DNA of 64,000 nt from Entomortierella parvispora E1425 (GCA_020891255.1 BQFW01000009.1:124001-188000), one strand, 5' to 3'; positions 5,864 to 52,597 are shown, numbered from the stretch's first letter. The notes: generated by a model from the letters alone, not told the origin. Translations and numbers: made by a program.

Positions 5864-7947
<2,084 letters not shown>

Positions 7948-19209: not shown

Positions 19210-19830
19210 CGTTTTACATGGCTCTAGCATGGGGGGGCCACAAAAAAAAAAATCTGGGTTTACATGGCTCTAGCACGGGGGACCACTTGGGACCAACTTT
19301 GATCTCATGATGCTCGAGATTCTGATTAAGATCCCGTGTGCCTGATGGCATCATCAGATCATCAGATAGCTGCAGCCGAGGACTACTGCAAACCAAGGTG
19401 CCAGGGCGCCAGGGTCTGACCTTGCCACCGAAAAAGGGCCCCAAACGACCCTAAAAACATCGAAAAGTCGACCCCGCGCCACCAACCTTATAGGGGTTTA
19501 GCACGGGGGGCCCTTTCATGTCATGATGCTCGAGATCTAGCCAAGATACGGGGTGATACGGGGTTCCTGATGGCATCATCAGAAAGATACACTTGGGGAC
19601 TACCTACAACCAAGGTACCAAGGCCCCAGGTCCTGAACTTGCCACTGAAGATCAAGATTTACAGGGCACTAGCACGGGAGGCCAACTTTTTTTTTGGGGG
19701 GGGGGGGGGTTACAAGGCTCTAGTACGTGGGACCCAGGCTCTAGCACGAGGAACCAACTTCGATGTCATAGTTCTCTGGATTTCGATGATGGTCCCTGGT
19801 CCCAAAGTCCTTCAAATGATCACTGCGCCA
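19210..19830. repeat. Degenerate tandem repeat (~220-bp period) with six (C/T)TAGCACGGG-like sub-repeats
   Basis: Shared blocks TCATGATGCTCGAGAT (19305, 19521) and CCTGATGGCATCATCAGA (19341, 19566), plus a paired AACCAAGGT.CCA.GGC.CCAGG block. The CTAGCACG motif occurs near 19224, 19270, 19498, 19669, 19720 and 19741. Confidence 0.8.
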
Positions 19831-20555
19831 CCTATTTGGACCTGATTGGACGTAATTGACGGTGGCAAGTTGGTGGCAAGACGCGAAAGGTTGGTAGCAA
19901 GGCGCGCAAAAATTGGTGCGCTCTGTGTACTTGCTCTGCAGTGCTGAATCGTAAAAGTGTCCACTGTGAGCCTTGTACTCGTTGTGAAGACGCAGACGCT
20001 TTCTTTTTGTCAAAGGTCCCTCGCTGGCGCAGGGTTTATTGTGTTTATTGTCTGATACTTGTTAGTAACTCACTCTAGCGCGCATGCTCCACCCAAGGGA
20101 AACTGACTGAATAAAATGCTTCTGCATTGTACAGCCCGTCCAAGACGGCCCATTCACCAAGGTTTCGCGACCCGCGACCTCTTGGCTGGGACCTTTTTTT
20201 TTCTTTTTTTGTTCCGCAGGGGTGCCTCTTTGGCTTGACCTATGCTATCACAGTCCCAGACCGGGGCTTGAACAGCCTTCTCAAGATCGATTTCAACTAT
20301 AAGGCTGTATACTGTGTGTATCACACACAAATACTATACACGGGCTGGGAGCCTGTGGTTGTCCCAGGGAGCGATCATTGCTGGAATTCAACTGTAAAAA
20401 TACAAAAGGCTTTACACTGTTGTCCAAGGTAGAGCGATCATATATATGTCTTTTCAAACTTGGCTAACGAAATGTCTATTTTTCTTTAGTTTTTATTTGT
20501 TGCGAAACGTTCATGTCTATTTGTCTATTGTCATTCATTTTTTTTTCTTTATTCG

Positions 20556-38253: not shown

Positions 38254-41102
38254 ATGGTGTTTATCGAGGAGATAAGCGAAAATAGTAGCGAGGAGTACAT
38301 CTTGGATATGTCGGATAGTCTCCCAGCTGACAACGAAGACAAAGGTACTTTTTGGCCAATGAACCGCTATCACAGAGATCCATTTCCATACAATACTAAA
38401 TGCAGCCATACAAACTCTAGGCAAAGCACATGTTGACCCTAATCAACAGCAAAAGAAAGCAAACGACACAACCGTTCCAGAAGGCCACGGAAAAGTTAAT
38501 GGTCGATCTTCTTTTTCTGGAAATCGCAAGTATGTGGCAGAACTGATGGAGACAGATACACATCTGTCTATCGGACTCTGGTTGAGGCCAGATTTAGACG
38601 CAGGTGGACTGGAAGCGGTCTTTAAGTGCAGTGAATTCATAGAAAAGCCGGTCCTGGCTCCGAACATCATCGCAATGAACGCGTATGACATATCTTTGTC
38701 CTACGACGCCTCATGGTTGATATTGGTTGATGGTACTACCGACTATCTTCAACGACCCGAGTCCGGTGAGCATCCAAAAGGATTGTTCAGGGTCTATGAG
38801 ATCGTCAAGAGCCATCCCCTGCCTCCCGTGTCGCAAGACCAATGCTCCTTCTCCTTTAGACGCTCAGCCGAAGTCGAGAAACTTCCTGGTCTCCACAATT
38901 ACTACGGTCTCGGGGAATTCCACATCGCGGATGACAGTGACGACGACAATTTCAAGAAGGAGATGTTTGTTACGTGTAATGGCGCTTCTGTCCAAGTATA
39001 TAGCCTCTATGGAGGATGGAAATATCTGCACACAATTTCTCTCGACCATCCCGAACATGCAGTCACCAGGTTTATCCTCGCTGCCAAAATGATAACCAGT
39101 CTTCAAGGTCGACTTTTTGCCTGGGTAGTTCACGGGACGGATATGATCGCGGTGTACAACATGGAGCAAGGGTCTATGGTATCTTTCATCACTCGCACGT
39201 GCCTTGACCGCAGCCAGGCAGCACTCAAAACTGCATTGAATATCTCAGACAATGGTGTCCTCCTGGCTGTCAATCGTGAAGGCACACTTACAACACATTT
39301 CACCAAAGATGGAACACTGCATGAAGTTCTTCATCTTCCACCTGAGTTTTCCAGCTTAGGCCGTATTACTTTCATTCGAGGCAATACACAGCTCATAGTC
39401 AGAGTTGTGCAAGTAGGGACACCCAACCTGGAAAAGACGGGTCTTGTCATCAATGTGGAAGATCTGTCTATCGCTGGCACTTTCATCACCCCAGAAACAG
39501 GACACCTACAGCCGCTCCGTGCCAATGATCTGGCCATCACTCCGTATCATCCTGTTATAGTGGATTGCAATGATTTATGTCAGTCAGACATGTCACCTCT
39601 TGGTCAACACCCAACGGAGATTACGATCTCTGATCTTCGTTTCCAAGTGGAGCTTCAATCCACCGTTGTTGTCCTCCGTTGGGAGTCGCAGGACCTTCGA
39701 TCCGTCGTAGTGAGAATTACGAGTCTTGACGGGCTGTCCAGTAAGATATTCACTATTCCTCCAACTTGCGACAACGAAGACTGGTGGCTGTATGAGACTG
39801 CAGTCTTCCTTGAAGATCGTGGACAACTGATTGTGGAGGGACAGGGCATGGTCTTGATCTGGAGGCTTCCGACTACGTTTGAGGGCGATTTTGCTCTCGT
39901 TCTATCCTGGATGATCGGGCCAAGGAATGCTGAATGGGCAACATGTTACCATAGCCAACTTCATTACCGCCAAACACACGCTCTTGTGTGCCCCGTCACC
40001 AACAACTGCAACTGTGACCACCACACGACATGGATACCTGTTAAGCTTAAACTGGACGAGTTGACGTCTCAAGACAGAGACGAAGTGGTGTCTTTCCTGA
40101 AAGGGATTGATGTTGTAATCTACACGTCTCTGCAGGCCACTGAGGCATTCAAGAGATCAATTTTTCAATATGTTGGTCAACATTTGAGCATGAAGATTTT
40201 GGAGGAAAACGTTCTTGCCATGGTCATCAGCAGATGGACATCAGACCACTATGCTAGCTTGGAGGAGTTCATGGTTGCTTTCTTGGATAGCCCTTTTGGG
40301 GTGATGCACCCAACAATTGAATCAGTCAGTTACGTACGGTTAGTTCTTTTGAGCGGACGGCAGGAGCCACGGTCTCTTGGTATCGCCAGGATCCTTATAG
40401 ACAGGTGTATCAATCAGGCCCGTGATGCCAAGGATGTCGAATACCTCGTCCAAATCATGAGAGGTCTCACCGAGCTGCTCAATCCAAAACATTTCCACTC
40501 GGTCTTGGCACTGCAAACGTTGCGCCGACTTGCCTACTTCCCAGTCAGTAGTCGTAAGTTCATATTCAACCACCATACTATCGCCCATCCTCCTACATTC
40601 CCACTCTGGCCATGGAGAAGACACACGCGCCCTCTACATCTGTGTAAAGACCCAATCCTTCAACTGTCGGGAAAACGGATTTATGATGCACAGAACGACA
40701 ACTTCACTCGCGAGCTCTTTGTTGTCCCGTTTGATATGCTCTGGAAAGTTCGTCGCGATGCCAAAGACCTGCAGAAAACAAGAATATTGGCGGCTGCAGG
40801 TCCTTTACGCTGGGCGCAGCAGTTTTTACGCGCAGTCGTATACAAACTCACACCAGAGCGCAAAACTCCTGTGAGATGCTACGACTTTACCCTCGACATG
40901 CTTGACAACCCAGCTCTTGCGGCCTTGGTTGAGTACAAGTGGAACACTATAGGCTTCAAGTATTGGCTGGTGCGATTCCTCTGCCAGTGTTGCTTTTATC
41001 TTATGGTGGTCATCACCGTCCTCATGCAAGCCTACGATAATGAGGGTAAATCTTCCGAGGGTATCTATATTGCGATCATATCTTATTCGGCTATTTTTTT
41101 TT
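38254..41102 (+). pseudogene. 5' part of a TRP-like ion-channel gene (long cytosolic N-terminus), interrupted by the MULE
   Basis: Exon 1 38254-38344, then a long exon ending 'NPALAALVEYKWNTIGFKYWLVRFLCQCCFYLMVV..YIAIISYSAIFF', where the frame meets a TGA formed at the element junction. Confidence 0.85.
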
Positions 41103-41319
41103 GAGTGAACGAATTCCCACCTCCCCCCGTCAAACATCACTGTGACGGGACGTCAAAATTTATTCTGAGCCCACTTTTGACGGCCCTCTTCCCCCGTCTG
41201 AGTTGTCAACTGCGCTACTCTGACCCTCTCGCATCCCGTCAGAATGCTTCTCAGCACCTATTCCAACATGCCGTCAACGATTAAATTATCCCTTCATCTT
41301 ACCACCGGTGAAAAAAATC
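41103..41319 (+). repeat. Left terminal inverted repeat of the MULE (217 bp)
   Basis: GAGTGAACGAATTCCCACCTCCCCCCGTCAAAC...CACCGGTGAAAAAAATC. Confidence 0.97.
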
Positions 41320-41326
41320 ATCCTTT

Positions 41327-42802
41327 TTATTCGACATTTTTTTCCAAGATAAAAATTGGTGGCAACTCTTCATCATGTTGCCGTTTTTTGGTCATTTGAT
41401 AGTTTTGCTGTTCTTTCAGTTCTGATCTGAGATGTCTCAACGCCCATCGATGAACATAACAATGATACACGTCATACAGCATGAGACAGAGAGATTCGAC
41501 GGAATGAGCAATAGCCAAGTGTAATACTACTTGAATATGGGCAGGGCAACATTCGAGGGCAGACTGGCCAGAGGCATTGAGGTAACGAAAAAGATCATAG
41601 GGGCGGCCATGGTCGACTAGGCTATAGGCGAACATGGCTTGGCGTGGAGGGATATTTGTTAGGAGTTGAGGCCTTGGTCCAATTGGCTCTAGGGATGGCC
41701 CTAAGCAGAGATACATGGGGAAATCGCTTACCGTATGTCAGCCTGCGTTCGTGACAGCACGCGTCTTGTATATCCTGATCTAGAGCCTGACCCGATATCT
41801 CACTTTATCACTTTACCTCCAGCCTGTAATTCACAACAAGGCATATATTTCCTTCTTTTGTCCAGAGTACATCATACAATGAAAAAGATAAGTCACTAGT
41901 AATATCTTTCAGGCGTCTTATAGTCCAGGATATCTTTTTTTTTTTTTTTTGTAAGGATGACAAAGCCTCATACACAGAACTCATTGCTAATGTAGGAATG
42001 GTTGACGACAGGCGGCGTCTCCATGAAGGAAAAAAAAAAAAAAAAAAAGAAGAGGCGACGCGTATTGACGCGTGATGCGTGAATTACAAATCTAGGCGAC
42101 ATATGAATTAAGACAGATCATTGAAGCTGGTTCTACAATAAGAAGATATAATGCTTGCGGCTACTGCACGAGCTATCAATTAATACCTTCAGCAAATAGA
42201 AGTATATATATCATCATAGGATAAAGATGGAAACAAGATGTAGATTTTTTCTTTTTTTTTAAAAAAAAAGGCAAAACCCAAGACGAGTCCCCCAAGTACT
42301 CTGCGCGCGAGGGGCTGAAAGCCCCAACTGAGCCTCCGGAGGCCCACCAAAATCACCAGGGAGCTGACTGTTACCCTTATTCATTTTGTGGTGTCCTTTG
42401 GGAAGTTTGTGTGTTTGTGTGAGAGTGAAAGAGCGAATATCAGGTGAGAAACAAAAAAAAAAAAAAAAAATCGACCGTCGATTTACCTTGCTGCTCTTCC
42501 TCCACCCTGTTTATCTTTCTTCGCTGCCGATCCACTCTTTCCTCGATTCCGGATCTACTGGCACCACAAACCGGGGCGTATACGACGGGTATAACCCCTT
42601 CACGGGTTAGGACTATCTTTTCTGCCAGTCTTTGGCAACGGTCAACTATATGTCGCTCTTGCAGTCTGATCGAGAATAGGAACATCAATATTGCATACGG
42701 GTGACTTTTGACCGAGTAAGACAAAAAAACAACAACTACCCTTCGTGTCTTCCCTGGCAGAGTGGCAGAGTGGCAGAATGCTGTGCCCGGGGTATATGCC
42801 AC
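41327..42802 (-). CDS. Possible spliced hypothetical gene in the left arm of the MULE, reading toward the left TIR
   Basis: Exon-like open segments flanked by GT/AG: 'RLQERHIVDRCQRLAEKIVLTREGVIPVVYAP..EEEQQ', 'MSSVYEALSSLQKKKKKISWTIRRLKDITSDL..', and the 129-aa ORF at 41327-41716. A complete gene model was not resolved. Confidence 0.3.
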
Positions 42803-43051
42803 GAGTAGACACGCTAGGTGTAGATTTTTTTTCTTTTTTTAAAAAAAAAGGCAAAACCCAAGATCGAACCCGGGTGATAACATACTATAACCCGCAATTA
42901 TACCGCACTAAAAAAACCCAAATAAAACATGTGAGGAAAGTAAAAAATATAATTTAAGTACACTTTACGTATACGTATAGATCACGTTATTCACGTGACA
43001 ATTACCGCACATAGTCCTGTTTGATACGCATTTGCACCTCACCATAGCACC

Positions 43052-44418
43052 ATGTCCAACATCAACGCAAACAAGGACATCACCGAACGTCTCGAGCATT
43101 TCCGACATATTTTCAGGGACCCAGAAGACGTCGAAAAACTTATCAGAACCACAAATTGCCCCAGCGATCACCTGTGTGAAGGTAAATGATAGTGTGTTCA
43201 TTCCATTAAAATCATGACCTGTTTCATTAACCTCACCTCGATTTTACTTTGATGTACACAGCTGCACATGCAGTCAAGCATTCTGTCAATGGCAATCACT
43301 ACTCAGGTCTTATCCAATCGAGCTGCCCCTCAAATCAGCGGCGAATCTTTTTGACGGTCCAGTTTCTGGTGAGACAGCTATCAGGGACTACACAGGGTGA
43401 TCAGAAGGAGACTCTCCAAGGAAGTGGTGAGCTGTATGCTAGGCTTGCATCGGAGCTCGAGGTTGCGGAACCAAGCTTAAGAGGAGTGACGGCCCTAGCT
43501 TTATCGACCACCGTGGAAAGAATCTCCCAGGATGTTCTCGAGCTTGACTCCTTGGCAGCTTTGGCACCATTCGATTCTATGTTTCAAACTTGTCATTTGA
43601 AGTACTGCAGGATACTCCGTGATATTGAGGCCACTATCCTTAGTGTCAGGCGGGATAAACGTGAGCTCACAGACCAGGAAAAGCAACAATCCCATGCTGC
43701 AGAGGTTACAACGATCGTCCACCCTCCACTAAAGAGAAGAAGAGCAGTATGCATTGAGGACGATACGGCGGTGGGAAATGTTAGGCATGGCTTGGAGCCG
43801 GAGGAATACGTGGCTCAACGACCTGATCAAGATAATATCGACAGCCAAGATCATCCGAAAACAGTGGTCTCCTCGGCATCATCATCGGTACGAAACCGAC
43901 AGCCCACGCCAATATCAGTACTTATATCTGCGGCGCGACCACCTTCAATTCCAGCAGTCGCTTCTTCATCGACAGGAGCAAAAATGGGGACGGTGCCAGG
44001 CACTGAACGTGATATTCCCTCCAGTGTTTCATCTGAATCGGGCAATAGCTCGAAACAACAGCATCGGGGTGCCAATGGATCGAGGTCTCGAACAATAACT
44101 CTAGAGAAGAGATTGGACGATCTTCTCACTAAACAGCAAGGACAGCAAATGCTACAGGCGCTGCATGTAGTACAGCACGGGCAGCAAATGTCGCAACATA
44201 GCCAGCAAGAGATTTCACGAAAGGTCGATGCCATCCTTCTAAACTTACAACTCTTATCACAGGCGATAATGCAAAGGCTCAACGATGGCCAAGGCCCACA
44301 CGAGTCTATATGTTGTGCCGAACATGCTACGTCCTCACGGCCACCTATATTTCCCTTACCAACAGTTACTCCGAGGACACCGCAACCTCAAGATCATTCG
44401 TTGAGCAGACCAGAGTAG
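43052..44418 (+). CDS. Hypothetical protein carried by the MULE (~430 aa, 2 exons)
   Basis: ATG at 43052 gives MSNINANKDITERLEHFRHIFRDPEDVEKLIRT. Intron 43182-43261 (GTAAAT..ACACAG) splices in phase to the 389-aa ORF. No recognisable domain. Confidence 0.7.
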
Positions 44419-44949
44419 ACCTCTCTCTCCTTTGTCCAAGAGAAATTTCTTTATGTGTACATGTACTTGAGTTAGTGCGGAGCATTGAAGAGTCCAGAGT
44501 AAATATGTACTGTACATAGTTTTTTTGTCACGCAGCCATATTTGGTCTTGCCGGCGACCCATGTGAGTGATTTTTTTTTTTTTTTTTTTTTTTGACAGAG
44601 CACCAATAAAACTGGGCAGATTGCTCCAACGTCCTTCAAGTTGAAAGTCGGAGTTGTTCTTTCATCCTCGGAATTCTAACCGTGGACATCAAAGCTTGGG
44701 AACATGGCGAAAACACAGGGTCGTGAAAGAAAAATAAGCGCAAACTCTAATGACACACCATGCAACCATGCATGCGTGAAAATTTTTTTCGGACCTTCAT
44801 AACGCGTTCCGACACTGGGCGTGAAGGTGAAGTGGTGGCTGCTAGATGCATCCACTATGGACTTGGAAGACTTCTAAATCCCTTTTATATGTTGGGCTAC
44901 ATCCTCTTTCTCACCGCACCTTCTGCTCTTCCCTTCATTTTCTGCCAAT

Positions 44950-46132
44950 ATGCTGGACATTCCCCGCAATTCCACTTCATCTGCCAACCTTGTCCCTATA
45001 GACATAGAGACCTTCCAACCCGCAGACTGCCCCATCGAATTGGGGCGCGTCTGGGTCCAAGACAAGACTTGCCAGGAGCTACTTGACTGGGCGAGGGTCA
45101 ACGGTATTCCATCAGTCAGTTTGGACGCCTTTTCCGTCGTTTCTCGGCCGCAAGGGGGAGGTCTATAATCAGTACGATCTCAGCTCTCTTCGCACTATCC
45201 CCGGGAACGGTGACCTGACCGATGCAAGAGAGGAGCTGAGAAAGCCCTCCAAAAGCCACTGTCGTCTTGTCATCGACGGCAAAACTCTGACACCTGAAGC
45301 GGTCAGATATTTGCCTCAGGTGATAGATACCGTAAAACGTATTGCCGATATCCGGAGAATGCTTACATGGCTCCAAGATACGGTTTTCCATTTCGATCCC
45401 GAGCTTGCAACATCATTTGCGGATCTCCTACGCAGAAGCACTCTTGATACTCAGTTTGATCATTTGGGGCAACGCTTAAAGGTCAGGGATATTCTCGAAT
45501 TCGCTGAGGAGTCGTGGCTGTCAGAGACTTGCGTGGATGCAATCATCTCATATTTCAAGCATGAGTATGGAGGATGTGACATCCTCTTCATTCCCGCCCG
45601 TTTTCTCTGGCACCTTGAGCAATATGGGAGGTGCGAGATGGCCTTTGCTGACTGGGGTGGTGACATCACCTGGAAAAAGGAGGATCTTGCGCAAAGACTC
45701 TACAGAAGGGCCTACGGGATAGCCGGTATGGACGCGTGCCATTGGGGGGCTGTACGTATTGATCTCCAAGAGCCTGCCATTAAGTTTGGCGATTCCATGA
45801 TGCAAGAGATTCCTACGCCGGCTATTGACGGGATCGTCCAGTGGCTCATTTGCAACATACCAGAGGAGACACAACAGTGGATGGATGCCGAAAGAAATGT
45901 CACGAGACTACCTGTTATTCGCCAAACTGACTTCGGTTCTTGTGGCATCCACGCTGCAGCCGCTATCGAGCAGGATCTGATGCGCGTCCGCAACTGTCCT
46001 GACGCAACCGCCTTTTACGACAATGATCACGGCAGCTGGGAGGGACAGATGGCTCATTACCATCGAGCGCGATACTTGAAGATCATTACGTCGCAATTGA
46101 AGGTAATAACAGTTACTTCTTCAGAGAGATGA
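44950..46132 (+). CDS. Ulp1-like (peptidase C48, SUMO/NEDD8-type) cysteine protease carried by the MULE; apparent +1 frameshift at 45154-45158
   Basis: 'WLSETCVDAIISYF', 'CHWGAVRIDLQEPAIKFGDSM', 'RQTDFGSCGIHA' give His, Asp, Gln and Cys in C48 order. Confidence 0.85.
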
Positions 46133-46607
46133 CCGTTCGACCATGCAAATTCTCCGCAAATGAAAAAAGGGACTTACATTCATATCGACTCTGCTTTTAA
46201 ATACCCATTAGGATGCACTGGATAGCACCCCGATCATGACAGCTTTGTCTCCAGCTCCTCCCGTTAGCATGCCAGCTCGTACGTAAAATAATGATGCCAA
46301 CCTCATTGTATGAAGACCCGCAGTTCATTTACCGTTTCGCTCCAATTCGATTGATAGAGTCCGGCAACACCTCCAACATCATCGATTTTGGACCGTACTC
46401 CGATCTTAGTGATTATGACGAATTGCCGGAAAGGTAATGGATTGTTGGCGATCGATCTTTTGTACCTAGATGCTTGACCTAAAATCGCTCTGAAGAAAGT
46501 AAAATAACCGAGGAAAAAATCTGTGGCCCTGGCCTCTTTCTTCGATCCATAGTGATCCTCTGACTAATGTCTCCGCAGACGAGTACCTCGTTGATATCAC
46601 GACGCAG

Positions 46608-49590
46608 ATGCCAAGCCAAGGCCAGACATACAGCTCTACTGCAAGCTTCGCTGGAAACGCCCTCAATACTGCCTTGGATGGGGTCCATCGCTCGGACGAC
46701 ATCAATGGCGGAGCCGAGCCTGCGCTTGGTGAAAGTGACAGCAGTGACAAGGTCATTGATGACTCTGAGGGAGTAGACCAGCCACTCACATTCCAGCAGT
46801 ATGCATTGGAAATGTTTGGCAGAAAGATCGAGGAGCTCGATGGAGAGCCATGGATGCCGAGTATCGATTTTAAGTTCATGGATCTGTCGGCCGCCAAGGA
46901 GAATATCAAAGAATGGGCTATCCAGTTCGGGTTCAAAACAAGGACAAGAAGATCATCCAAGACCGCTGGTATGTATTCATATCCCATGTTGTAATCAAAC
47001 TGGCCATTTCATTTTTTTTTCTTTTTCTAATTACTCCAAACATCAATTCTGTAGTTAAAATTGTCTGCAGCCACGAGGGGACACACAAAGCGAAGAAAGT
47101 TGATGATCCTGCCAAACACCGTGCTAGGATGGCCTCTCCACGTTGCGGTTGCGGCTTCTTCATCAACCTCACTTCACCCCGTCAGATGGGAGGTAGCTGG
47201 CGGATTAGTTCCTTCAAACTTCGTCATAACAACCATGAAATGGACGCAACAATGACGAAGTACACGGTTCTTGACAAGACTATGAAGGCTACCATCAAGA
47301 AAGGTTTCGATCTGGACATGGGCGAAAGAATGACCATCAAGCTCCTCGAGTATGAATTCCCAGGGAATAAGTTCGACAAAAAGAAAAATCCGGAGCTATC
47401 TCAGGATGTGCGAAGCCAAGTTAGACGCGACGGTCACCTCGAGCCAAAGTGAGCGTCTCCTGACACTCCTGAACCAGCAGTCGTTTTCGGCCACTTCCGA
47501 GGAATGGTATTATCAGGCAGACTACGACGGCTTTACTCTTAGAAGAGTCTTCTGGATGAATCCTACTCAGCGCGCGCTATACAGCCGATATTACGACGTT
47601 GTTGTATTGGACGCCACTCTACAGACGAACAAACTTGGGATGCCACTAGTACTTATCATCGTCATTGACTGTGAATTCCGATCACGGCTTGTTGCCTGCG
47701 CTCTAACCCGCAGCGAAGCTGAGGAAGACTACAGGTGGATCCTTGAGCAATTGCGATGCGCCAGCGGAGGAGTCGATCCTGGCGTTGTGTTTGTTGATAT
47801 GGATCCCTCACTTGATGCTGCCATTTCACAAGTTTGGGAGCACACTCGCGTTATCAACTGCTTATGGCACCTGCGAAACAACGTTCGTGTGCGTCTTCAA
47901 CGTGTTTTTGGTATTCGGAGGTTTGACCAGTTCAGTGTGCTCTTCGAACAAGCACTTGGAGCCCTTACACCAGGGGGAATTTGAGAGAGTATGGCGCGAT
48001 ATACTCTCCAATTTTGGTGGTGATGGAGATGGTATAGTTGTTCCTGGAAAGGCCCCTATTGACGACAACCCCCTTTATGGAGGAACAGCAGGAAGGTACC
48101 TCAAGCGGCTACACAGCAGGCGAGCACACTGGGCAGGACCTTGGATTCGAGCGCCATTTACAGCAGGAGTGCGATCCACGCAGCGTGCCGAAACCACCCA
48201 CAGTGTCATCAAGCGATACGAAGTTACCAGCAGCACAACGCTTCCCGAACTCTTTGAAACTATTATGTCAAAGGTCGACAATGAAGTGTCACGGCCCAGA
48301 CCAGAGGATATTCGTATTCTGACCGAGACCGAAAATGGAGGCATTGAGAGGACATTCCGTGGTGTTCTTTCGATCAACCGTGATCGCCTAAGCACGTATG
48401 CACAAGCCAGGCTTAAGATAGAGATGGCTGACTCCTTGACCCATATACATCGAGATGAGGATATCGATCGATTTCTCAGAGCACAAGTACCACATGCGGG
48501 GAGAAGTACAGTAAGTTAAGCTCCGCAAAGGAAATGAAGGCCAAAGCTGGAGTTCTACGTTCTAATTGCTCATCTATGTAGGTCACGGTTGATCAGAGGA
48601 CTGCTGGTTCTGTTAGCGAGCTCATTGCGCGTGTCGATGTGGACAGCATTGAAAGCGTTTTTTCAGTCTTCGATAACAGTGCAAGAACGGAGATAAGGGA
48701 CTACGTGATTCTTTTTCAAGACGGATCGTATTTTTGCACTTGCGTCCTCCTGCAGGGCGAAGGATTTGTGTGCCGGCACGTTTTCCGCCCTCATGCAAGT
48801 CGATGGTCGTTTCAAGTACAAAGTCGGTCTTATCTCTGCGAGGTGGTGTAGGCCTGATTTCGAAAGGGATGCTGCCACTGCTGTGGAGAGTGAATCTACT
48901 TCCATTTCAGCCGATTCAGTCTTGGCTCGGGCAACGGCTCGACCAAGTGCATCTGTCACGAAGCCAAATGATGAATCTATCCAAGCCTCCCAAAGATTTT
49001 ATTGCCCCGAGCCAGTCGTCTCTGCCAGCAAGGCTACGAAATCAAAAAAAATCCGGTATTCGAAGGTCATGCAAGCAGCCAAGGGTCTTGTGAGCGATAT
49101 TCTAATGCCTGGCGTGTCAGACACAGATTTCAAGCAAGTCATCGAGAACATCAGAGCTGCATCGTCATTTGTTCCACAAGTCACAAATGGGGCTTTACAG
49201 CATCCCCAACAACAACAGCATGGGGATGGGCATACTGAAAAGAAAGAGGGCGATGCTCAAGACATATTCAAAGGTATCGACCCAGGGATGGTTATCGACG
49301 GTGACAAAGTTGCTACAAAAGGTAGACCGAGAAAACGCAGACTCAAGGCCAGCTACGAGTCCCCATCTCGTCGCCTTCGTTTATCGCGATCGAACAAGAC
49401 AGAATTGCCGGGTGTTATCAAGAAAGGGAGAGGAAGGCCCCCTCGGAAAGATGCTGCGGTCCCACCTCGGAAAGGTGCTACAATCCCTCCCCCGAAGGAT
49501 GTTCAAGCCCCCCCCCGGAAAGTTGCTGCAAATCAAAAGGCTCCGGTGATTCCAAGGCGATCTACACGGCTGACAAAAACTATGCCTTAG
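46608..49590 (+). CDS. MULE transposase (FAR1-type N-terminal domain, MULE DDE core, SWIM finger, AT-hooks); 2 introns and 3 apparent +1 frameshifts; true start uncertain
   Basis: 'WAIQFGFKTR..IVCSHEG..RCGCGFFI..WRISSFKLRHNNH'; 'VVVLDATLQTNKLGMPL', 'VFVDMD', 'CLWH', 'STQRAETTHS'; 'FCTCVLLQGEGFVCRH'; 'GRPRK', 'GRGRPPRK'. Introns 46969-47054 and 48511-48580. Confidence 0.93.
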
Positions 49591-50654
49591 TTCACGTTTG
49601 GGTGCTCTCTATAGCCAGAGCACAGAGAGAGAGAGAGAGAAAGAGGGAGAAAGAAGGAGAAAGAAGGAGAGAAATTGCTCGTGTCCAAGGAGGGTTGAGA
49701 TAATAAAACGAATGGTCCTTCGCGCAAGATTCAATTGCATCAAAAAAAAATATCCCGAGGAGTCCAAAAATTTACATCGACCAACGGTGCGATCTGCCTC
49801 TCGCCGTTCACCATAGTCTTATTGACAAGCAGTGTCTCATTTTCACTGGGAGTCATCCTATCATCCCCATGGCAGACGCAAAGAAAGTACCGCTCAAGAA
49901 CAAGGGTAAAAAGAAAATGAAGGAAGGCACTGACGATGCTGGAGGAAAGCCTTTGCAGCTCAGGACTGCCCGTAAAACAGTCTTGGTTGACTACAAGGAG
50001 ATCCCTGGCACATCGAGATCATCGGCCTCTGCCTGGAGTTCTGCTTTGAATCTCTTCATCCAATCAATTTCGTAGTCACGTCGTGCCATCGCTGTTCTTG
50101 GAAATGGTGGAAGGGGGTGCTGGGGGAAAAGAAAGGTGGATAACATGGACGCGCGTTTGTCCAGGTGTGTGCGTATTACAAAAACAGACAATCAGAAAAA
50201 AAATCCCGCTGGCCTTCGCCCGAGCGTTGCAAAGTGGGGCAGACAGGCCGCACCTGCATAGTAATTGTCGCACATGGGGTGGTCAACCATGAAGGGGTGG
50301 ACCAAGAATGCTCTAGTACATGTAGTTTGTTGCCATAAAACGTTTCATTCCTCTAGTGTGCCTAGACTGTTGTTGAGCAGAAAGCCCACTGAGGGTGAAT
50401 TACTTTTTCAAGGTCACGACTGCTTTGAAATAATCATGGTTGAGGATACCGTTCGGTGAGTAGTTTCAGTCTGTCAGGCCCAAGAACAATCTTTAATGGT
50501 CTTTCAGAAACGCAACTTGTCATCTCCATTTGGCCTGTTTGGCATATCGCCAAGCGTTGGTGAGAGAACAGCAATGACAGAGGGAGGTCATCAGACCTCA
50601 CTATTTTTATTCTAGAGTAAGTTTACTTCGATAAAAGTATTCAAGAAAATGATG

Positions 50655-50871
50655 GATTTTTTTCACCGGTGGTAAGATGAAGGGATAATTTAATCGTTGA
50701 CGGCATGTTGGAATAGGTGCTGAGAAGCATTCTGACGGGATGCGAGAGGGTCAGAGTAGCGCAGTTGACAACTCAGACGGGGGAAGAGGGCCGTCAAAAG
50801 TGGGCTCAGAATAAATTTTGACGTCCCGTCACAGTGATGTTTGACGGGGGGAGGTGGGAATTCGTTCACTC
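50655..50871 (-). repeat. Right terminal inverted repeat of the MULE (217 bp)
   Basis: GATTTTTTTCACCGGTG...GGGAATTCGTTCACTC, the reverse complement of 41103-41319. Confidence 0.97.
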
Positions 50872-52597
50872 TTTTTTTTTACCGGGAGTTCATCCAATGC
50901 TTCCGTGGCTGGACCCGTTACATTAAGTATGTTATGTGTTGTTCCCCTTTTTGGTTTTTCGGCTCCTTTCTAGACGATGACTTTGCTAACCACCACATTC
51001 TGTGAATAGGTCCATGTACAACATTGTCGATTTACTGGCATTCGCCTTCCCGCTTGCTGCGGCAATCAATCAGCTCCTCCTTTTGCATGGAATAACCACA
51101 CTGAACGAGACAACAATGCAGCTTAATGCAGGGCTCTTTGGCTTTTCTGTACCTTTGATATCGCTGCACTTTGTAAGTTCTGATTCGACAAGCGAGCCGA
51201 CCGCGCCAATAGAAATTGCTCTTTGGACTCTGCTCCGTTCAGGATTTCTAACGAGTTTTATTCTTTTTCGGATAGCTTTTTGAACTACGAGTCCTCGAAA
51301 CAGTCAGCCAGTTTGTTGTCATTATCACCCGGATCATCAGCCGCATCCGGGTTTTTTTCATCATGTTCTTTGCAGGGTTGATCGCCTTCACAATTGCCAT
51401 CCTTCATGTGCTTTACGCTTGCCCCAGCAAAAACAATGAGAGTTGCGGCGATCGGTCATCGGATCAGCTGCCGAATCATTTCTTTAAAGCCTTCACGGCA
51501 ACCTATTTTCTAATGGTAAGTTGTTGTCCACCCAAATTTGCATCTTTTTTTACACCCATACCTCGTCCTGTGTTTCTGACAAGACTCGATTCCTTCTTAT
51601 CTTCATATAAACAAACAAAATGATAGGGAGGCCGATACGATCCCATTACTGATGACCTTGGCTCTGACAACTGGGCTTTACAGGTGCTCATGATTGCCTA
51701 CTTTTTCTTCACCGTCATTCTCATGCTTAATGTCCTTATTGGTAGGGCATCACTGGAATTTGCCATGTTAATGGGTGTGATAGCGAACGAACTTGGGTAA
51801 CTGATTCTGAGCTCTCCTTTTTTTAATCATCCTGTACTAGCACTGCTTAACGTCGCCTACAACAGTGGTGATATGAGTTGGCGTCAGGTTTGGCTTCGCA
51901 ACAGGATGCGTGTTGTTGAAAGCGCCGAGAACATGTCGTACAATATCCCAGGTACGATCAGCATTTTGTACCAAACATGTTTTTTTTTTAAAAAAAAAAA
52001 CAAAGGCCTATTTGAGTATTAATGACAGCATCGTCGTCTTGCAATGTTATTTCTCCTTTAGGCTTTAGGGATGCTCATAACTGGTTCCCACGAGAGATAT
52101 ACTATTCTGTGACTCATGAGCAGGCCAAAGGCTACAAAGAGCGATGGGGTAAAGGAGAAGGCGCTGATGATTACGTTCTGCCGGACAAGGGAGCACACGT
52201 AGTCTTGAAATCCGGAGAGGCTAGCGTGGGACAAACCTCCAAGGACTCTCCGGTGCCTAGGCCTGCAACTCCACCCTCAGAGACAACTTCGGGACACACC
52301 GTCACTTCTTCTGAAGACAGCAAAACTGCAGGCAAGACGCCGACATCACCAGTGACCACCCCTGGCACAACAACTGACAGCACAGTCGAGGGGTTGGATG
52401 TCGCGCCAAAGGATCCGCTCCGAACTTTGGCAGTAGATCTGGAAAAGCAGATGAAACAACAGCAGGCTATGTTTGAGGGCCAGATCGAGAGGATGGAGAC
52501 CCAGATTCAACAGCTTCAGGAGTCGTCTAATGCGCAAATCCGGCAGTTGATTGAGCAACTTGTAAAACTGCACTCGGGCACAAGCACACAGCCCTAG
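50872..52597 (+). pseudogene. 3' part of the TRP-like ion-channel gene (transmembrane helices, pore, TRP-box-like segment, coiled coil; multi-exon)
   Basis: 'YREFIQCFRGWTRYIK|SMYNIVDLLAFAFPLA', 'LFELRV', 'FFAGLIAFTIAILHVL', 'GGRYDPI..LMIAYFFFTVILMLNVLI|ALLNVAY..WRQVWLRNR', and the C-terminal coiled coil 'LEKQMKQQQAMFEGQIERMETQIQQL'. Confidence 0.88.

Follow-up and report, generated by a model that had tools for sequence, protein, structure and literature searches.

The Mutator/MULE superfamily is characterized by target duplications (TSDs) of 9 bp (range, 8-11 bp), and MuDR-like TIRs are ~100-500 bp long. MuDR of maize is an autonomous two-gene Mutator (mudrA and mudrB) with TIRs of ~200 bp and 9-bp TSDs, in which the two genes are convergently transcribed from the TIRs; to our knowledge, it has no protease domain. 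Multi-gene MULEs with required second genes exist, mudrB being one such gene. Pack-MULEs are non-autonomous elements whose cargo usually consists of gene fragments captured from host DNA. MuTAnT, a MULE of Medicago truncatula, has a strict preference for a simple A/T-only target, TA microsatellites (PMC4486113). Mutator elements with an Ulp1/C48 protease were described in hydra, lancelet, Arabidopsis, maize, rice and melon, and the Arabidopsis KI-MULEs, the melon CUMULE and the rice, maize, hydra and lancelet families all combine C48/Ulp1 with a MURA-type transposase within a TIR-bounded element (PMC2836005). A survey of cut-and-paste transposons in fungi also used the C48 protease as one of its accessory domains (PMC5751038).

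A 9.8-kb Mutator-type element with this combination was found at positions 41103-50871 of the window, that is, the whole 64-kb stretch of DNA that was analyzed (BQFW01000009.1:124001-188000 of Entomortierella parvispora E1425, GCA_020891255.1). Its likeness to KI-MULEs and CUMULE is one of architecture and does not imply that its C48 module descends from the plant or animal ones. In contrast to those families, this element comes from a fungus (Mortierellaceae), and the ~380-aa module is N-terminal in the predicted transposase protein, a position that is kept in relatives with 27-38% identity. An earlier note on this DNA had proposed an undescribed system; because Ulp1-bearing Mutator elements were previously reported (PMC2836005, PMC5751038), the element is instead a new family of an already described type. 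The best overall explanation, in which we have good confidence, is a young cut-and-paste MULE, very probably autonomous, that is present in four genomic copies in E. parvispora E1425.

The left TIR (41103-41319, + strand) and the right TIR (50655-50871, - strand) showed 100% identity along exactly 217 nt. They first differed at position 218, and similarity between the arms extended to 246 nt at 96%. A 50-nt probe from the tip hit two sites in the window, both in these TIRs, where 0 were expected. Each arm contains five CCGTCA/TGACGG motifs (41127-41276 in the left TIR), compared with 34 in the remainder of the 64-kb window (~0.1 per 217 nt), making these motifs candidate transposase-binding sites. 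An exact TIR search of public metagenomes returned nothing. The element is flanked by T9 (TTTTTTTTT) at 41094-41102 and 50872-50880. A homopolymer T9 is weak evidence for a TSD by itself, and the other three copies each have their own 9-bp duplication. We accepted T9 as the TSD because joining the flanks through one T9 gives one long host ORF: the upstream part of the interrupted gene (38534-41102, + strand) resumes its frame at 50881 when the element and one T9 are removed. A cDNA contig (40147-41292) leaves the host exon and extends over the first 190 nt of the TIR. The insertion thus disrupts an exon of an expressed host gene. The annotated gene model downstream had a weak Ion_trans match; a 'TRP-like channel' label for the host gene was not confirmed by Pfam on the upstream 856-aa ORF and was dropped. 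With 217-nt TIRs at 100% identity, exact 9-bp TSDs at all four copies and a MULE domain, assignment to the Mutator-like elements in this early-diverging fungus is supported. The identical 217-bp TIRs, the T9 duplication and the Mutator assignment in the earlier note were therefore all borne out.

Three further full copies were recovered, giving a total of four, each with different flanks. Contig depths, both genomic and cDNA, were read over 39200-45100, and the genomic depth was 79 in the flank, ~318 within the element and 629 over the TIR. The ratio of the depth inside the element to that in the flank also indicates four copies. The copies differ at 18 homopolymer indel sites and, outside one poly-A tract, by zero substitutions. 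The element is thus very young, in agreement with the earlier proposal of recent activity. Cargo order, which the same note had suggested comparing, was identical in all four copies.

The TSDs of the four copies are T9, A9, AAAAAATTA and AATTTATTT, all purely A/T. All-A/T 9-mers make up 0.46% of the host 9-mers (P = 4.5e-10 for four out of four); this target rule rests on n = 4 insertions. The strict preference for a simple A/T-only target resembles that of MuTAnT, but the targets in these four insertions were A/T homopolymer-rich 9-mers rather than (TA)n, and the present element has its own transposase gene. The copies form two pairs, one on contig 9 with starts separated by 39 kb and one on contig 3 with starts separated by 62 kb; both members of each pair are on one strand. 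In our explanation, new copies insert near old ones, which produces these two linked pairs.

The element has two genes, both on the + strand and both starting well inside the element, unlike those of MuDR. Gene 2 (44950-49590, + strand) is predicted to encode a 1,390-aa Ulp1-FAR1-MULE-SWIM-AT-hook protein from exons 44950-46102, 46212-46278, 46358-46433, 46553-46968, 47055-48510 and 48582-49590. The model draws on homologues, on signals in the sequence and on AUGUSTUS predictions by the annotators; its five predicted introns all have GTA/GTR donors and YAG acceptors, and copy L005 is annotated from the same ATG (P0161). The annotators' intron 47350-47449 was rejected because it would delete residues that are conserved in relatives.

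Domain assignments in gene 2 agree with the DDE transposase with FAR1-type, SWIM and AT-hook parts that the earlier note had described, FAR1 and MULE being identified by Pfam and the SWIM-type and AT-hook parts by pattern. The FAR1/WRKY-GCM1-type zinc-finger domain (46914-47242, + strand) is split by intron 46969-47054. Pfam FAR1 (PF03101) matched 46874-47449 with E = 2.2e-6 and 28.7 bits against a cut-off of 28.1, and P0161 with 30.5 bits. Across 33 relatives, 23 of which carry FAR1, residues C603, H628 and H631 hardly vary. The MULE DDE catalytic core (47598-48204, + strand) was assigned by Pfam MULE (PF10551; 47334-47981, E = 2.3e-18, 66.9 bits against a cut-off of 27.6) and by landmark motifs, namely D in VLDAT (47598-47630), D in VDMD (47787-47810), CxxH (47859-47873) and E in QRAET (48175-48204). 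The corresponding D718, D785, C806, H809 and E916 are nearly invariant in the same 33 relatives. A search with the MULE piece found 3,622 relatives, the nearest outside its own family being at most 54% identical. The SWIM-type zinc finger (48735-48846, + strand) was recognized by the pattern CxCx11CxH (48735-48779), which is followed after 21 residues by RW, and P0026, P0034 and P0056 align to 48618-48788. Pfam SWIM gave no score with the pieces from the window; an extra C at 48788 splits them at this point. The basic C-terminal tail (49318-49533, + strand), also defined by pattern, contains two AT-hook-like cores (49318-49341 and 49426-49449), with KGRPRK at 49318 and RGRPPRK at 49429, and four PPRK repeats that come from a 24-nt tandem repeat at 49438-49533. 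Downstream, the right subterminal region (49591-50654) contains an open frame at 49707-50072 (+ strand) without a family match; codon-usage scoring did not separate coding from non-coding among the ORFs of this region.

Gene 2 is interrupted by apparent frameshifts in every assembled copy. In the window, these are at 45154 (G5 here, G4 in copy L005), 47384 (an extra A in AAAAAGAAAAA, missing from copy L002), 47973 (G5 here, G4 in copies L001 and L005) and 48788 (the extra C in the SWIM-type region, missing from copy L002), all on the + strand. The site at 45154 was located by overlapping reading frames and the other three by homologue alignments, before comparison with the copies that lack them. 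Each of the four is missing from at least one other copy, and removal of the four bases gives a single 1,390-aa ORF. Introns bridging three of the frame changes were rejected since the changes are 1-nt homopolymer differences; the earlier note had taken the frame breaks for introns or had missed them. The assembly was made from GridION reads with SMARTdenovo, followed by Nanopolish and Pilon with default settings (PMC8759367). Because the assembly is Nanopore-based and each break is missing from another copy, we read the four frameshifts as homopolymer miscalls rather than decay, and short-read polishing probably left multi-copy repeats uncorrected. The deposited models of three of the four copies (GJJ70201.1, GJJ70186.1 and EMPS_06727) place predicted introns around the presumed miscalls.

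If the frameshifts were real, one or more defective copies would have been amplified by the transposase of another MULE family acting in trans, or would now be dead. As assembled, gene 2 has its first stop after 72 codons and 57 in-frame stops, and the frameshifted length at 45154, 47384 and 48788 is present in three of the four copies, so that errors, if such, must be systematic rather than random. However, 18 homopolymer indel sites with zero substitutions outside one poly-A tract would be an implausible natural spectrum, and the indel patterns fail the four-gamete test (e.g. 47973 versus 49907), being mutually incompatible on any tree. The in-frame version of every frameshift exists in another copy of this Nanopore-based, default-polished assembly. 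Moreover, 0.98 of the 31-mers sampled from 44700-50500 were present in the strain's contigs, which would fit ~3-4 wrong sites in the window, and cross-mobilization needs matching TIRs, whereas the nearest outside transposases are at most 54% identical. An Illumina-derived contig with four-copy depth (42553-44559) also agrees with the window where copy L001 differs. We therefore consider real frameshifts very improbable. On the preferred reading of assembly miscalls, the transposase is probably intact and the element very probably autonomous.

The Ulp1/SENP-like C48 protease core (45443-46000, + strand) was supported by Pfam, profile and fold searches. Pfam Peptidase_C48 matched 45008-46129 (E = 5.6e-5, 23.5 bits against a cut-off of 20.7), and the triad motifs are His in HW (45740), Asp in FGDSM (45785-45799) and Cys in QTDFGSCG (45923-45946). 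The corresponding H264, D281 and C331 do not vary across four lineages that share 19-31% identity, and in yeast Ulp1 the aligned motifs are HW, DS and CG. A four-lineage profile matched yeast Ulp1 (1euv, E = 1.5e-10) and SENP1 (2.7e-10), whereas a PDB search with the single Ulp1 sequence found nothing. In Foldseek, the best matches were Ulp1, SENP5 and NEDP1, with a target TM-score of up to 0.76. Word-indexed protein searches gave no matches for a 374-aa Ulp1 piece and only gene models of the same family for residues 365-700 of P0151; the divergence of the module and the length of its relatives exceed what this method can handle.

The C48 domain lies inside the TIR-bounded element in all four copies. 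In the related elements L007 (E = 1e-33) and L008 (E = 1e-37), a homologous 380-aa module immediately precedes the transposase, and P0052 contains C48, FAR1 and MULE in one uninterrupted 1,257-aa ORF. The presence of the module next to the transposase in these three distant relatives indicates that it has long belonged to the lineage; no ends or TSD of the related element in L007 could be fixed with confidence. The earlier note had listed the protease alongside the transposase. The C48 domain is indeed present, and the protease most likely belongs to the transposase protein instead of having a gene to itself, as judged from the predicted splicing and P0052. Were protease and transposase instead two adjacent genes on the same strand, the three short introns of the linker would be a prediction artefact. 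The Ulp1 frame does close at the stop codon at 46130, the transposase frame is opened by an in-frame ATG at 46608, the ORF calls of L007 and L008 list the C48 module and the transposase apart, and C48 shares a protein with the transposase in only 2 of the 33 long relatives. These ORF calls are intron-blind, however, and the split in L007 and L008 says little. The three consecutive introns of 79-119 nt have donors GTAATA, GTACGT and GTAATG with YAG acceptors and keep the frame, the small exons between them score as coding in frame (albeit by a score that does not discriminate), and P0052 has the three domains in a single ORF on its contig. We thus regard two separate genes as unlikely and treat gene 2 as encoding one fused protein.

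Gene 1, which we named orfM (428 aa; 43052-44418, + strand), consists of exon 1 (43052-43181), an 80-nt GT..AG intron (43182-43261) and exon 2 (43262-44418). It starts 1.95 kb inside the element, and in another copy it is annotated as EMPS_06738; P0158 is 100% identical to orfM. A spliced cDNA contig of 1462 nt covers 43053-43179 and 43260-44559 at a depth of 198, ~20-fold that of the host gene (~9), although this depth is summed across four copies. The cDNA contigs come from run X2, which is labelled 'DNA?' yet behaves as cDNA; there are no listed RNA runs. Therefore, orfM is a separate, spliced transcription unit that is strongly represented in the cDNA contigs. The three deposited models mentioned above fuse orfM with gene 2, contrary to this contig; the two genes are separated by an intergenic region with a T23 run (44571-44593) whose length varies between copies. 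Thus, of the 'one or two further spliced ORFs' in the earlier note, one spliced gene was found and a second was not, and, with two transcription units instead of three or four, the description of the element as unusually gene-rich was not supported.

The left subterminal non-coding region (41320-43051), where the orfM promoter is presumed to lie, includes A/T runs as well as direct repeats of 48 nt (42236-42283 and 42816-42863). The depth of the cDNA contigs is zero across 41367-42942. Within this region, a nested or shared repeat is suggested by the contig depth, which reaches 461 at 42549-42745, and by a 71% similarity to L004:7797-8168.

No Pfam family matched orfM, and its AF2 model (pLDDT 45) was too poor for a fold search. 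At low confidence, the model shows helices in the N-terminal part, then a stretch lacking secondary structure, and finally one long helix at the C terminus. Relatives keep the N-terminal domain, orfM contains a KRRR motif, and Atlas searches with orfM gave only weak Myb/SANT-like leads (scores 0.81-0.86). Its relatives are P0159 (54% identity) and P0160 (EMPS_03913; 42% identity), and the intron of orfM has the same position and phase as that of P0160. The non-coding stretches upstream of orfM and of EMPS_03913 are 71% similar. No counterpart of orfM was found in L007 or L008, nor any relative in public metagenome contigs. On these sequence comparisons, orfM is a lineage-specific acquisition that shares ancestry with a gene elsewhere in the genome, and since it is absent from L007, L008 and the metagenome contigs, the element may function without it. 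The earlier note had named absence of the cargo from relatives as the sign of a one-off capture; the Ulp1 module was kept beside the transposase in L007, L008 and P0052, and orfM was not found there.

There is about an even chance that orfM is a passenger, i.e. a host gene paralogous to EMPS_03913 that was acquired by a Pack-MULE-like capture and has no role in transposition. The P0160 locus has no transposase within 10 kb and no TIRs, DNA-level capture would be expected to preserve the intron position and phase that both genes have, L007 and L008 lack a counterpart, and orfM has no transposon-associated domain. Ancestry and intron position shared with a gene elsewhere are likewise features of Pack-MULEs; unlike those elements, a complete expressed gene here travels with a full transposase gene. 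Against the passenger reading, orfM has its own start, intron and stop and the high cDNA depth (four copies combined), and the similarity upstream could mean that the EMPS_03913 locus is itself a relic of a related element. The language-model leads, though weak, point to Myb/SANT-like DNA-binding proteins, and MULEs that need a second gene are known, as in MuDR. In comparison with mudrB, orfM lacks a Pfam family; it is set apart from MURB by layout and not by direct sequence comparison.

We propose the following mechanism. The FAR1-type zinc finger probably recognizes the repeated CCGTCA motifs in the 217-nt TIRs, and the MULE DDE core would cut and rejoin DNA to yield the 9-bp TSDs; the chemistry is taken from the superfamily, while the duplications were observed. 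The basic AT-hook-like/PPRK tail probably anchors the complex to A/T tracts through their narrow minor groove, and such binding would explain why all four TSDs are A/T-only. The Ulp1/SENP-like cysteine protease, with its triad kept and conserved in distant relatives, would be a working part of the transposase; its most likely role is to strip SUMO, or a related modifier, either off the transposase itself or off chromatin or repair proteins where the element leaves the donor or enters the target. A de-modification role was already proposed for other Ulp1-bearing transposons.

A more far-reaching combination of ideas, which we consider doubtful as a whole, is that the tail steers insertion into poly(dA:dT), making this a naturally target-selective Mutator element, and that orfM is a new MULE accessory partner. 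In the latter role, orfM would be a DNA-binding or regulatory protein like MURB or the Myb-like partner of Harbinger, needed for efficient transposition. More speculatively, the same combination has the clan-CE protease process its own protein, cleaving the long product at a Gly-Gly site in the linker. The acidic linker of the gene 2 protein contains DDINGG|A (46695-46721), and the corresponding linker of the relative P0003 has four DxGG|L repeats.

These results have a practical consequence for users of GCA_020891255.1, in which multi-copy elements probably carry unpolished homopolymer errors. Whether the protease is functional or captured has been a question since plant Ulp1-bearing MULEs were described. 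Here, the module and its triad are kept beside the transposase in relatives that are only 27-38% identical, which argues for a working part and against captured baggage. The apparent restriction to A/T-only 9-mers and the landing near the donor are simple, testable properties of the element. We know of few genetic tools for the Mortierellaceae, an important family of fungi that live in soil and in association with plants. A very young Mutator with defined ends and a probably intact transposase would be a candidate for insertional mutagenesis in Mortierella.

The terminal inverted repeat (TIR) arms of the 9.8-kb Mutator-like (MULE) element, at window positions 41103-41319 and 50655-50871, share 100% identity for exactly 217 nt, up to the first mismatch at position 218, and remain weakly similar as far as 246 nt. 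The perfect 217-bp TIRs claimed in the earlier note are therefore present. A 50-nt TIR tip probe matched two sites in the window, both at element ends, where none was expected. Each arm carries five CCGTCA motifs, compared with 34 in the whole rest of the window (~0.1 per 217 nt); these motifs may be where the FAR1-type finger binds. The claimed T9 target-site duplication (TSD) lies at both ends (41094-41102 and 50872-50880). Taken alone, a homopolymer TSD could have arisen by chance; its identification is supported by in silico excision of the element with one T9, which fused the flanks into a single long open frame of the host gene, and by 9-bp duplications of their own at the three other copies.

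The window copy interrupts a host exon at a T9 run that codes for Phe-Phe-Phe. A sequencing run labelled 'DNA?' (X2) behaves as cDNA, with adaptor tails, zero coverage of non-coding DNA and a spliced contig. One X2 contig (40147-41292, depth 9) links the host exon, across the insertion junction, to the first 190 nt of the left TIR, indicating that the host gene is expressed and truncated, and transcribed into the element. The upstream host ORF had no Pfam match, and the downstream host gene model matched Ion_trans weakly.

With the MULE piece as query, an exhaustive profile search recovered the E. parvispora gene model GJJ70201.1 (99% identical), which together with related models led to three further loci in GCA_020891255.1. 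On contig 9 (BQFW01000009.1), the window copy (165,103-174,871) and the L005 copy (204,287-214,060) share one strand and start 39 kb apart; on contig 3 (BQFW01000003.1), the L002 (1,559,318-1,569,094) and L001 (1,621,309-1,631,090) copies also share a strand and start 62 kb apart. Contig depths in the strain's own DNA run were 79 for the flank, ~318 for the element interior and 629 for the TIR, indicating four copies and eight TIR arms, and loose contig ends at the element tip matched flanking sequence of the three other copies. Because two such linked pairs would be improbable by chance in a 38.7-Mb genome (~3e-5, a rough estimate rather than a computed value), new copies tend to land near the donor, and the same-strand pairs suggest local reinsertion with the donor copy retained. 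A short dispersed repeat unrelated to the MULE, partly tandem in the window, occurs both at window 19306-19869 and in DNA flanking the L005 copy (L005:18174-18513; 76-79% identical).

The TSDs of the four copies (TTTTTTTTT, AAAAAAAAA, AAAAAATTA and AATTTATTT) consist of A and T only. In 98 kb of host flanking DNA, 0.46% of 9-mers contain no base other than A or T, giving P = 4.5e-10 for four such targets in four. The tail of gene 2, with two AT-hook-like cores (49318 and 49429) and four PPRK repeats, would offer a possible explanation. Simple A/T-only targets are shared with the MULE family MuTAnT, whose targets are TA microsatellites (PMC4486113).

The earlier note had counted one or two further spliced ORFs beside the transposase and protease; the element instead holds two transcription units in all, orfM and gene 2, both on the + strand. 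The predicted exons of gene 2 are 44950-46102, 46212-46278, 46358-46433, 46553-46968, 47055-48510 and 48582-49590, and every predicted intron has canonical signals. Intron 46969-47054 interrupts the FAR1 domain, which is uninterrupted there in relatives, and intron 48511-48581 has GTAAGT, a CTAAT branch-site motif and TAG. The domains named earlier were all recovered: Pfam matches for Peptidase_C48 (45008-46129; the Ulp1 part), FAR1 (46874-47449) and MULE (47334-47981; the DDE part), and, by pattern, the AT-hooks and a SWIM-type CxCx11CxH finger at 48735 that lacks a formal Pfam SWIM score. The protease and transposase frames are connected through three short introns that are only predicted; a protease-transposase fusion is favoured by the relative P0052, a single uninterrupted 1,257-aa ORF on its contig with C48, FAR1 and MULE domains. 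The acidic linker from protease to FAR1 domain contains DDINGG/A (46695-46721), and the corresponding linker of the relative P0003 (residues 85-200) has four DxGG/L repeats; P0052 and P0006 lack such motifs. These Gly-Gly motifs could be sites at which the fused clan-CE protease processes the protein, or may be coincidental. The right subterminal region holds a 122-codon open frame (49707-50072), a possible gene, in which an internal Met is followed by a lysine-rich stretch; the frame matched no family, and homopolymer differences among the copies fall within it.

Relatives align to the window copy's protein without gaps, whereas its DNA frame shifts near ~47380 and ~47972, and near ~48788 in the SWIM finger; at 45154, a G5 run marks where the frame from ATG 44950 meets that of Ulp1. 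In a four-way alignment, the copies differed at 18 homopolymer-length sites and by one 3-nt change within a poly-A tract, and were otherwise identical. The frameshift base at 45154 is absent in L005, those at 47384 and 48788 in L002, and that at 47973 in L001 and L005; no tree can reconcile the site patterns with one another. Default Pilon polishing gives little weight to multi-mapping reads, and such down-weighting would leave homopolymer errors in repeat copies. SMARTdenovo was used to assemble the GridION reads, and polishing was by Nanopolish and by Pilon at default settings (PMC8759367). An Illumina-derived contig at four-copy depth (42553-44559) sides with the window copy at a site where L001 differs. 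Setting the four bases as in other copies gave one 1,390-aa frame with five introns, opening at ATG 44950 and ending in the stop at 49588-49590. Given the copy differences, their contradictory patterns, the Nanopore assembly and the restored frame, we read the frameshifts as assembly noise and consider it quite unlikely that they are real. Multi-copy repeats appear unpolished in this assembly.

A profile of the protease module from four lineages matched yeast Ulp1 (1euv, E 1.5e-10) and SENP1 over the entire catalytic domain, and a fold search with its AF2 model (pTM 0.55) gave Ulp1, SENP5 and NEDP1 as top matches. The triad His264, Asp281 and Cys331 is invariant across the four lineages at 19-31% identity. 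Profile, fold and triad thus place the module in C48. Two related elements, L007 from a soil metagenome and L008 from a Logan contig, each have a homologue of the complete 380-aa N-terminal module immediately upstream of a transposase 34-38% identical to that of the element; the modules align at 27-30% identity (E 1e-33 for L007, 1e-37 for L008), and both score as C48. For the protease, this arrangement rules out one-off capture of cargo, and indicates an old, selected part of the MULE lineage. L007 also has a second C48-like stretch (7007-7405) upstream of its main module, 28% identical to residues 265-416 of P0161, the L005 gene 2 model.

A 1,462-nt X2 contig (depth 198) spans 43053-43179 and 43260-44559, joined across a GT..AG intron. 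The orfM frame opens at ATG 43052 and encodes 428 aa identical to EMPS_06738, annotated in the L005 copy. AUGUSTUS models GJJ70201.1, GJJ70186.1 and EMPS_06727 fuse orfM with gene 2 in three of the four copies, placing predicted introns around 1-nt homopolymer miscalls. Because the orfM transcript continues past its stop codon, these models are chimeras; only the L005 copy has a separate orfM annotation, and its gene 2 model also skirts miscalls. No Pfam family matched orfM, and language-model leads to Myb/SANT-like proteins were weak. A poor structural model points to helices, an interval without secondary structure and, at the C-terminus, a long helix. orfM has only two relatives: EMPS_03913, encoded elsewhere in this genome, which is 42% identical across the N-terminal domain and whose intron lies at the same codon and in the same phase, and a Gryganskiella cystojenkinii fragment (54%). 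No transposase was found within 10 kb of EMPS_03913, and no orfM counterpart in L007, L008 or metagenome contigs. orfM is an expressed lineage-specific gene. Upstream of it, 48-nt direct repeats 580 nt apart (42236-42863) enclose a segment with genomic depth 461 versus 318 and loose contig ends at 42582 and 42656. Part of this segment is 71% similar, inversely oriented, to DNA upstream of EMPS_03913 (L004:7797-8168). The segment may represent either a small nested repeat or the remains of a related element.

Every defining Mutator-like feature tested was found, save the formal SWIM score. Ulp1 domains are documented in Mutator elements of hydra, lancelet, Arabidopsis, maize, rice and melon (PMC2836005), and a survey of fungal cut-and-paste transposons used C48 protease among accessory domains and recorded MuLEs in Mortierella (PMC5751038). 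Our search of published papers found no description of this family or of Ulp1-bearing MULEs in Mortierellaceae. Since its features are those of Mutator elements and C48 proteases, and Ulp1-bearing Mutator elements are documented, the element belongs to a known kind, and the suggestion of an undescribed system is not supported: the element is real and clean, yet not a new kind of system. What is noteworthy is the expressed, lineage-specific orfM, together with the conservation of the N-terminal protease module, the restriction of targets to A/T and the apparent local reinsertion.
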